Sequence record: PV037725.1
Reading direction: 5' to 3' (one strand)
Length of the DNA: 64,000 nt
Shown one piece after another: positions 39,985 through 44,749 of this stretch; the stretch's first letter is position 1; every line of letters begins with the position of its first letter. The notes beneath the pieces were generated by a model. That model was not told the origin of the DNA, did not search any database, and was given only the letters and a program-made list of their open reading frames with translations. Made by a program: the position numbers and the translations under genes.

Positions 39985-40356
39985 ATGTGGCATGAGATCT
40001 TGTCGCGTTATGAGGGACTATCTGTAACAGATGCATTTAATCAATGCCTCAAAGACCGCGTGGGATTTCTAAGAGGGTCTCTACAGGTAGGACATCAGTG
40101 GTTTGGTATTGATGGCTATGGGTTACTACACTACGGTAGTCTAGATGTGGTAAAATACAATCTTTACAAACCGGTAGTTAGTTTTGGACGACACTTCACC
40201 ATTCATTGGACTGACCGTGTATTTGACCATCGTAGAACACTACCTGGCTTCACAGATGTGAGCCAACTCGATGGTGTGGAATTAGACTCGTTCAATACCC
40301 AACTTGAACATTGCCGTGAGCAGTACAGCGAACAAATAATCGGTAGGAGTTTCTAA
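39985..40356 (+). CDS. hypothetical protein
   Basis: tiled ORF. Confidence 0.7.
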   Translation: MWHEILSRYEGLSVTDAFNQCLKDRVGFLRGSLQVGHQWFGIDGYGLLHYGSLDVVKYNLYKPVVSFGRHFTIHWTDRVFDHRRTLPGFTDVSQLDGVELDSFNTQLEHCREQYSEQIIGRSF

Positions 40357-40907
40357 TGGACCCTAAATCTGGGCTGCGCCCTTACTTGCAAGACGACGTT
40401 GAGGATATTGTCAACGCATTGATTGATGATCAAGGGAATGTAAATTCACAGATCATGATTGTGGTCAATGGTCGTAACCGTTGGGTAAACGTGGGGTTGA
40501 TTCTGAATACAGCCAAGTTTATTTGGGATCGTTGTGAGCCAACACCGATTGCAGATACCTTACATGAGATGTTCACTACCGCCTTCACCGACTACGTACC
40601 ACCCGTAGATATCATCGATGGGTTTGGTGAGGCCCCACGTAAGTTAATCCGTGCAGGCTTGACTAAACGTGATGGCATACTGACAGCTTCTTTGACGTAT
40701 AAGCGTCAGTTCGGTACACAGACCTTTGGGCGTGATCGTACCGAGTACTACGTTTCTGGACCATTGACTAAATACCAGCAAACTTATCTGATGCACCTAC
40801 TACTGGCTCACGGTACTGGTGGCCATGTAGGCCACGGTATGGTAGACTGGGATCTTTATGCTGACATCGAGACAGGTGAGAACCGTTTCGAATTGAGGAA
40901 CCAATGA
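40356..40907 (+). CDS. hypothetical protein
   Basis: coupled ORF. Confidence 0.75.
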   Translation: MDPKSGLRPYLQDDVEDIVNALIDDQGNVNSQIMIVVNGRNRWVNVGLILNTAKFIWDRCEPTPIADTLHEMFTTAFTDYVPPVDIIDGFGEAPRKLIRAGLTKRDGILTASLTYKRQFGTQTFGRDRTEYYVSGPLTKYQQTYLMHLLLAHGTGGHVGHGMVDWDLYADIETGENRFELRNQ

Positions 40908-42571: not shown

Positions 42572-42609
42572 CCCATTGTATGAAACTAACCTAAACAAGG
42601 AATACTGCT

Positions 42610-42696
42610 ATGAAAGTTAAAGAACTGGTTATCGGCTGTGACGAAATCAAATTCGGTGAAGAGTACGAGGGTTTCGATGAATACGAGGGCTTCTAA
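42610..42696 (+). CDS. 28 aa acidic peptide (not in ORF track)
   Basis: AAGGAA RBS; MKVKELVIGCDEIKFGEEYEGFDEYEGF. Confidence 0.65.
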   Translation: MKVKELVIGCDEIKFGEEYEGFDEYEGF

Positions 42697-42698
42697 CT

Positions 42699-42737
42699 AT
42701 GACGTACGTCCAGACATCTGAAGAGGAATGGGTATGA
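42699..42737 (+). CDS. possible 12 aa peptide
   Basis: MTYVQTSEEEWV; ATG 2 nt after upstream stop, ATGA-coupled downstream. Confidence 0.35.
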   Translation: MTYVQTSEEEWV

Positions 42738-42823
42738 GCAAAGAAACTATCATCGACGAGCGCCCAGATATCATCACCGATGAGCACGATGATCTCGGCA
42801 TTCGTGAAGAAGACTGGATCTAA
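42734..42823 (+). CDS. 29 aa acidic peptide (not in ORF track)
   Basis: GAGGA RBS; MSKETIIDERPDIITDEHDDLGIREEDWI. Confidence 0.65.
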   Translation: MSKETIIDERPDIITDEHDDLGIREEDWI

Positions 42824-42831
42824 CCATAGGT

Positions 42832-42860
42832 GAGTCCCTTCGGGGACTCCCTTTTATTTC
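42832..42860 (+). terminator. intrinsic terminator
   Basis: GAGTCCC-TTCG-GGGACTC-CCTTTTATT. Confidence 0.85.
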
Positions 42861-42880
42861 ATTTTTAGCTAGAGGCTTAT

Positions 42881-44638: not shown

Positions 44639-44749
44639 ATGCGTTTTGCGATTAGCCTGATTTTTTCAATCGTTATCGTTGGTGGCATGGGTTACAGTCT
44701 TAACCAAACTGTAATTCAAAGACACCATTTGGAGCACAGCAATGAGTAG
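44639..44749 (+). CDS. 36 aa membrane peptide (not in ORF track)
   Basis: MRFAISLIFSIVIVGGMGYSLNQ...; GGGGTG RBS. Confidence 0.55.
   Translation: MRFAISLIFSIVIVGGMGYSLNQTVIQRHHLEHSNE

Follow-up and report, generated by a model that had tools for sequence, protein, structure and literature searches.

The C-terminal tails of single-stranded DNA-binding proteins (SSBs), for example bacterial SSB, T7 gp2.5 and T4 gp32, are disordered and acidic, end in a hydrophobic or aromatic residue and are carried on a basic domain; they dock partner proteins and act in cis as a competitor of the binding surface. HMGB1, a basic DNA binder of eukaryotes, is autoinhibited by a plain Asp/Glu tail without hydrophobic end motifs. 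In the tails of tubulin and EB1, the last aromatic residue, which follows Glu and carries a free carboxylate, is recognised by CAP-Gly pockets. DNA mimics of the Ocr and ArdA kind are folded proteins with carboxylates placed on their surface like the phosphates of B-DNA. Here we describe a cassette of very short acidic open reading frames (micro-ORFs) in Pseudomonas phage Viktualia (PV037725.1, 322,655 bp, host P. syringae), a jumbo phage of the 201phi2-1 group that encodes both a PhuZ tubulin and a nuclear shell protein. The stretch analysed, called the window below, comprises bases 1–64000 of this record, and all positions refer to it. The cassette occupies 42610..42823 on the + strand, where an array of tail modules is spread over four ORFs in three frames, here named P1, P1b, P2 and P3. 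It probably comprises real micro-genes, three and probably four, that are translationally coupled and close an operon, and its peptides are related to the acidic tails of proteins of the phrog_4499 family.

The micro-gene cassette in Viktualia and its relatives

The cassette closes the 3' end of a long + strand run of genes and is followed by a terminator. An earlier note on this DNA, made from the letters alone, had reported three coupled micro-ORFs at this place, with lengths, counts of acidic residues and peptide ends that we read directly in the sequence. Its remark that the ORF track had missed them holds for P1 and P2; P3 is already present as GenBank coding sequence CDS0073. P1 (42610..42696, 28 aa, 9 Asp/Glu) has the Shine–Dalgarno (SD) core AAGGA at 42597..42601, 8 nt before its start, with core and spacing identical in the related loci L043, L044 and L050. 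Its layout is an IGC[DE]EI..FG module followed by two EYEGF units, so that the peptide ends EEYEGF-DEYEGF, and the two EYEGF copies use different synonymous codons. P1 is unannotated in PV037725.1; its homologues are gp358 of 201phi2-1 and gp353 of Phabio.

P2 (42699..42737, + strand like the other ORFs, 12 aa, ending SEEEWV) follows after a gap of 2 nt, with a GAGG core 10 nt upstream, and its stop overlaps the start of P3 by 4 nt (ATGA). As the earlier note had observed, the EEE codons of P2 form the SD sequence of P3. P3 (42734..42823, 29 aa, 11 Asp/Glu) contains the modules DERPDIIT, DEHDDL and, at its C-terminus, REEDWI, and has GAGGA 6 nt upstream. CDS0073 is the same ORF begun at 42728, two codons earlier and without usable SD spacing. 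We prefer 42734 because of the GAGGA at 6 nt and because this start agrees with those of the homologues and with the junction Met described below; the GenBank start is thus probably two codons too early. The fourth ORF, P1b (42677..42721, 14 aa, ending YDVRPDI), lies in a separate frame across the end of P1 and the beginning of P2; a GAGG core precedes it by 6 nt, and it is predicted to be translated.

Net charge is -6 and -8 for peptides of 28–29 residues. Directly before the stops stand the end motifs EYEG[FLY], EE[DE]W[IV] and D[EV]RPDI, and among the 6741 stop-to-stop segments in the six frames of the 64-kb window, they close only the four of the cassette. All modules appear to be diverged forms of a single unit, D/E-E-x-[D/E/P]-[D/G]-hydrophobic.

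Megablast against 201phi2-1 aligned just 85 nt of a 2-kb query (42693–42777) with 92.9% identity, at the syntenic spot. Combining blastn, tblastn, phmmer and contig look-ups, we found homologous cassettes in 15 distinct loci (Viktualia, the 323-kb metagenome scaffold L044, 201phi2-1, Phabio, RVTF4, Psa21, D6 and eight further groups of metagenome contigs). All named carriers are Pseudomonas jumbo phages and the others are phage-like metagenome contigs; the shared locus is downstream of RNA ligase or thymidylate synthase genes. Several homologues are annotated as "hypothetical protein": 201phi2-1 gp358, Phabio gp353, gp354 and gp355 (the counterparts of all three ORFs of the earlier note), the 36-aa coding sequence XDJ14548.1 of RVTF4, and Viktualia CDS0073 itself. 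The modules that recur across loci are a head of the type IG[CS].EI..G or [RK]E[IL]D[LW][GD][LF], together with EYEG[FLY], KEW[TS], D[EV]RPDI(IT), DE[HW]DDL, EEEWV and REEDWI. Their number, order and fused or split state vary in every lineage, and nearly all ORFs stop right after a module. The stop-adjacent acidic stretch with its hydrophobic or aromatic end is conserved, which is the pattern expected of the C-terminal docking motif that the earlier note had proposed.

The variation among these loci is of the kind left by selection on amino acids. In six motif blocks (38 codons, 7–18 copies each), the variable columns comprise 28 third, 6 second and 5 first codon positions. Nei–Gojobori counts for P3 of Viktualia against its relatives gave 4–9 synonymous versus 0–4 non-synonymous changes (proportions of changed sites pS 0.25–0.75 and pN 0–0.06; pairwise pN/pS about 0.03–0.1). 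For P1 against L043, L044 and L050, they gave 6, 7 and 6 synonymous and 1, 0 and 1 non-synonymous changes. All length differences between homologues are multiples of three, and a 4-mer SD core at -16 to -4 precedes 41 of 45 micro-ORF or internal starts, compared with 14% of all ATGs in the window. On the strength of third-position variation, Nei–Gojobori counts, in-frame lengths and SD-borne starts, we judge P1 and P3 to be protein-coding beyond reasonable doubt, and very probably expressed, selected peptides. Selection at the protein level, suggested in the earlier note, is thus supported.

BLAST-level searches found no second copy of the cassette in Viktualia. Scans of IMG/VR with the cassette matched only 201phi2-1 and Phabio, besides unrelated weak matches to a neighbouring gene, and a full-text literature search returned no paper on the cassette; the "gp358" of a paper on phage-nucleus interactions is a PhiPA3 protein and not gp358 of 201phi2-1.

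Free tails and the tail-bearing phrog_4499 proteins

A single-sequence phmmer search with P3 against 1.84 billion representatives returned two 30-aa orthologues and the 104-aa protein P0003, matched across the whole peptide (E = 3.7e-5); the fourth match, P0004, is a repeat protein unrelated to these. In P0003, a conserved domain of about 77 aa is joined in frame to a P3 homologue that forms the C-terminal 28 residues. The family came to 18 members of 85–120 aa (alignment A5) with two additional searches, and a homologue search with the 40-aa tail of P0007 returned P0007 alone. Compared with PHROG, the basic domain matched phrog_4499 (E = 2e-8), a family of unknown function; Pfam gave no match. 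The domain core C-x-C-x-x-C-R-x-W is invariant in the family. Charge is sharply split in these proteins, with a net +9 to +13 on the domain and down to -8 on the tails. AlphaFold predicted two long helices around a Cys knuckle and a disordered tail (pLDDT 58–62). Foldseek found 0 matches to this model of the fused protein in the Protein Data Bank (PDB), and no credible match came from PDB sequence searches with P1, P3 or the family profile.

The tails of the family end in REEDWI, EEEWV, D[EV]RPDI, EYEGF or EEYDG[IL], apart from two short non-acidic tails that end KEELV or SKELI. P1-type modules are present in the tails of P0017 and P0021, and a 117-aa protein of L052 carries every module type in one frame. 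Because a P3 homologue ends P0003, a P1-type module occurs in P0017 and P0021, and the L052 protein has all modules together, P1 and P3 are, by homology, both detached tail modules of the phrog_4499 family.

By tblastn the domain was found in 201phi2-1 (an 86-aa ORF), in Psa21 (gp319) and in D6 (WDS62122.1). In genome-wide tblastn searches for the domain, Viktualia and RVTF4 matched through the tail only and Phabio gave nothing; with P0003 as query, the match in Viktualia covered residues 73–104, that is, the tail. Intact peptides are retained in five lineages that lack the domain, three of them by these genome-wide searches (Viktualia, RVTF4 and Phabio) and two as judged from the locus only (L044 and L045). 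Relative to the one-frame versions, three stops and one frameshift divide the tail in the Viktualia cassette and the domain is absent. Compared in this way, Viktualia is a genome that has lost the N-terminal domain and kept the tails.

The genes that still encode a fused protein share a feature at the boundary between domain and tail. The junction reads Q-L-[E/R]-K-x-G-M, with the Met invariant, and GAGGA or GGAG lies 8–9 nt before the junction ATG in nine of the ten loci for which DNA was examined. Codon choice fits this arrangement: four of five junction Arg codons are AGG, a codon that accounts for 5% of the Arg codons in the long ORFs of the window, the junction Glu is GAG in 5 of 5, and the Leu codon ends in G in 10 of 10. 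At L054, the sole locus without an SD core at the junction, the tail is short and not acidic, and a separate micro-ORF for an acidic peptide lies downstream. Because junction Met, SD core and codon choice are all conserved, we infer that the fused genes too may release a free tail peptide, by internal initiation.

The 86-aa ORF of 201phi2-1 (L002:2769-3029; record positions 259769-260029) is itself unannotated. It lies between gp358 and gp360 in a record without a gp359, is a clear basic Cys-motif member of phrog_4499, and is followed by P2 and P3 homologues that are likewise unannotated. The domain gene is accompanied by a conserved upstream unit (L002:2705-2768; also in L043, L050 and L052) consisting of the end of a short ORF, a GC-rich hairpin (GCCCCT..AGGGGC) and the start region. 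The position of this unit relative to the micro-ORFs differs among genomes, which suggests recombination between repeated tail modules or a small mobile cassette.

The overlap of P1b and P2 and the surroundings of the cassette

Where P1b and P2 overlap, the same DNA is read in two frames. Residues 1–7 of P2 are the YDVRPDI module read out of frame, and this module ends P1b or the domain protein in the seven Viktualia-type genomes compared. C-termini of the YDVRPDI type occur elsewhere, at the end of free ORFs of 12–16 aa in RVTF4 and D6 and of the domain protein in 201phi2-1, L053 and L056. The EEEWV end of P2 also closes Phabio gp354, a 31-aa ORF of L045, and P0011, P0014, P0019 and P0020. 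Among the seven genomes its codons changed only synonymously in L050 and L043, and L056 has EEDWI. Such recurrence marks the EEEWV end as a genuine C-terminal module. The earlier note had suspected P2 of being a coupling spacer, and this fits its first seven residues but not its end.

The overlap lies within an invariant block (42698..42724, + strand) that has one variable column in seven genomes; the one change is synonymous in the RPDI frame and replaces Thr by Ile in P2. We consider the block probably dual-coded. It contains a perfect 10-bp palindrome, GACGTACGTC (42701-42710, + strand), which is unique in the window and not enriched, and other copies of the peptide motif that it encodes use codons that do not form GACGTACGTC. 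Third positions vary in 1 of 7 cases in the block compared with 5 of 8 in other copies of the motif, numbers too small to decide. Two recoding events at the end of the RPDI frame, programmed +1 frameshifting and UGA read-through, appear unlikely: re-pairing of the P-site codon after a +1 shift is impossible, a stimulatory SD sequence is absent, and P3 would share the frame by chance in one case of three.

The cassette is followed by an intrinsic terminator (42832..42859, + strand), a hairpin at 42832-42849 with a GC-rich stem of 7 bp and a TTCG loop, then a T-run; it is also kept in 201phi2-1 and L044. Positions 42832-42866 (GAGTCCC TTCG GGGACTC plus the T-run) gave short, near-identical blastn matches in unrelated phages, namely the Erwinia phages Phobos and pEa_SNUABM_38 and Pseudomonas phage PHB09, probably through convergence on a stable TTCG-loop hairpin. 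The sole Rfam match was a sub-threshold chance match over the terminator, the predicted RNA fold of 42600-42870 is neither stable nor unusual (z = -0.57), and no tRNA was found within the 64-kb window.

Two neighbouring genes deserve mention. CDS0068 (40356-40907, 183 aa, hypothetical), 2 kb upstream of the cassette, has VDWDLY near its C-terminus, resembling IDWDLF, a head module found in certain tail peptides (RVTF4, D6, Psa21 and P0014), possibly by chance. CDS0077 (44639-44749), 1.8 kb downstream, is a hydrophobic micro-ORF of 36 aa that overlaps the start of the next gene; it is conserved in this group of phages, with homologues in L045, L054, L056 and L057, is unrelated to the acidic cassette and probably encodes a membrane peptide.

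Possible function and comparison with known systems

A mechanism in which the cassette supplies free tails can be outlined. Its products would be intrinsically disordered acidic peptides built of reiterated D/E-E-x-[D/E/P]-[D/G]-hydrophobic units, in which the acidic stretch and the hydrophobic or aromatic C-terminus may dock on a partner through a surface of the latter that is both basic and hydrophobic. When fused, the tail would act in cis, by covering the basic domain or bringing a partner to it, and the free peptides would act in trans, competing for or regulating the interaction of the fused tail. Taken as a whole, this docking and competition mechanism is a tentative proposal, which we rate a little below even. 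A broader conjecture, which we hold to be doubtful, is that the nucleus-forming jumbo phages of this group make tail-only micro-proteins by gene fission and internal SD–ATG starts, in several C-terminal flavours (W-I/W-V, EYEG-aromatic and RPDI), in part by dual-frame coding, as tunable competitors for basic pockets on phage or host proteins.

Several points weigh against this interpretation. Our literature search turned up no ribosome profiling or mass spectrometry on these phages, and translation is deduced from the DNA. The SD-like strings arise partly from Glu and Gly codons, and the loci are related, so that the SD and codon statistics overstate independence. Given the low confidence of the domain model and the lack of a fold match, to call the basic domain nucleic-acid-binding is a guess from its charge. 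The motif-level scan for other tail carriers covered the first 164 kb of Viktualia's 323 kb. Finally, the near-total invariance of 42698-42724 could reflect a role at the DNA or RNA level in place of dual coding.

This last possibility can be extended to a rival in which the ORFs are incidental and the 27-nt block, with the 10-bp palindrome inside it, serves as a DNA site bound by a protein, as an anchor for recombination or as a signal in the RNA. The single variable column in seven genomes, set against other copies of the motif that vary at most third positions, speaks for it, as does the observation that the domain gene and its upstream hairpin adjoin the block at differing places among genomes. 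The palindrome, however, is not over-represented, neither the RNA fold nor Rfam points to a structured element, and dual coding explains the invariance equally well given so small a third-position contrast; we regard this rival as highly improbable. A less drastic alternative holds that only the ends matter: P1 and P3 are functional, and P2 and P1b are by-products of a frameshifted spacer that carries ribosomes from P1 to P3 and holds the ribosome-binding site of P3. The out-of-frame origin of P2 residues 1–7, the use of its EEE codons as the SD sequence of P3 and the non-synonymous nature in P2 of the one change in the overlap all agree with this. Yet EEEWV changes only synonymously or conservatively in four nucleotide versions and ends larger proteins elsewhere, P2 is retained in L043 and L050 without an intact P3 directly after it, and RPDI-ended ORFs exist free in RVTF4 and D6. 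It is unlikely in our view, though it deserves to be kept in mind. The cassette might also be debris, the decaying, functionless remnant of a domain-plus-tail gene after deletion of the N-terminal domain. The modules of Viktualia are indeed scattered over ORFs and frames relative to one-frame relatives such as the L052 protein, and the domain is gone. Against decay, the low pN/pS and the dominance of third-position variation extend to domain-less genomes, each piece retains an SD-borne start and a stop right after a module, and five domain-less lineages have kept the peptides, which makes debris very unlikely.

Other rivals accept the peptides and assign them a different task. The earlier note had suggested free peptides that imitate the C-terminal tail of host SSB and fill docking pockets on host repair or degradation enzymes. 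An acidic run with a hydrophobic or aromatic last residue and its free carboxylate is found in P1, P2, P3 and all homologues (F, L, Y, I or V ends), and several copies with slightly differing ends could suit several pockets. But Pro-Phe closes none of the roughly 60 termini collected, which finish in W-I, W-V, G-F/L/Y or D-I, there is no sequence, profile, Pfam or PDB match to an SSB or to a protein with an oligonucleotide/oligosaccharide-binding (OB) fold, and the tails descend from a helical Cys-motif protein. With two of three testable defining features, the Pro-Phe end and OB-fold ancestry, absent, the idea is not supported, and we think it most unlikely. A further suggestion is that the polyanions are nucleic-acid mimics or charge decoys, which would attach non-specifically to surfaces that bind DNA or RNA, such as those of host nucleases, RNase E or restriction enzymes, or would cancel the charge of a basic phage protein. 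Their high negative charge and the tethering of related tails to a strongly basic domain, as in tail-autoinhibited DNA binders, are compatible with such a role, whereas selection goes beyond charge to particular residues (W, Y, G, P and the C-terminal one), and the peptides are far shorter than known folded DNA mimics. This too is improbable. Tandem small ORFs with conserved Tyr, Trp and Cys positions could be precursors of ribosomally synthesized and post-translationally modified peptides, matured by an enzyme encoded nearby. Among nine neighbours of the cassette that were tested, however, there is no protein with a Pfam or PHROG family of maturation enzymes (radical SAM, ATP-grasp, cyclodehydratase, protease or similar), the extreme C-terminus is most conserved while N-terminal parts vary or are absent, so there is no leader pattern, and the peptide sequence doubles as the tail of a larger protein; we find this barely credible.

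Two more candidates were rejected. Leader peptides and attenuators lie upstream of a regulated gene, form alternative RNA structures and are conserved only at regulatory codons, whereas this cassette comes last in its transcription unit, ahead of a terminator, its RNA fold is not unusual and its peptides are under selection at the amino-acid level. Mimicry of PhuZ or chimallin tails was discarded, as the termini of PhuZ and the shell protein of Viktualia are without the cassette motifs. Viktualia PhuZ (L059:9826-10773) itself ends in an acidic stretch and hydrophobic residues (..DEDCMVV), which resemble the cassette ends in character without sharing their motifs.

Micro-proteins of fewer than 30 residues are routinely dropped from phage annotation, and in PV037725.1 two and possibly three of four were missed. 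The cassette offers a clean example, established by comparative genomics, with 15 loci under strong purifying selection in which modules are shuffled, fused and split and the stop is kept after the end motif. Tying the free peptides to a defined small basic protein, through its tail, provides a concrete handle for finding the partner, and fission or internal initiation suggests a means by which the phage could dose the docking motif apart from its carrier domain. Were the partner a host or phage-nucleus component, the system would be a compact model of linear-motif competition in phage-infected bacteria; otherwise it can serve as a benchmark for micro-ORF callers and for detection of dual-frame coding. 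If the conjecture of tail-only competitors is true, bacterial viruses would have their own counterpart of short-linear-motif mimicry, and these peptides would form a new class of micropeptide regulators in phages.

The closest relatives of the cassette are the annotated homologues in 201phi2-1, Phabio and RVTF4, which share its locus, modules, end motifs and coupling but differ in the number, order and fusion of modules. The phrog_4499 proteins have C-terminal tails homologous to P3, and some to P1, with identical end motifs; in Viktualia these tails are free and the domain is absent. SSB-type tails resemble the cassette in their acidic run with a hydrophobic or aromatic end and, for the fused relatives, in attachment to a basic domain. 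In contrast to SSB tails, the cassette has no Pro-Phe end, the domain of its relatives is predicted to be a helical Cys knuckle and not an OB fold, and its tails are separate peptides. HMGB1 offers an analogy without homology, a basic domain with a polyacidic tail of opposite charge as in the phrog_4499 relatives. The EYEG[FLY] ends resemble tubulin and EB1 tails in kind, again by analogy only; a CAP-Gly-type reader is not known from Pseudomonas, and none was found near the cassette locus. As for Ocr and ArdA, the cassette peptides have 12–29 aa and are predicted to be disordered (as part of the fused protein), and they match no such family. In sum, acidic docking tails and phage micro-proteins are each of a known kind. 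What is unusual here is that modular, shuffled tails are encoded by separate micro-genes, that the fused genes have a conserved internal start, and that one stretch is probably dual-coded.

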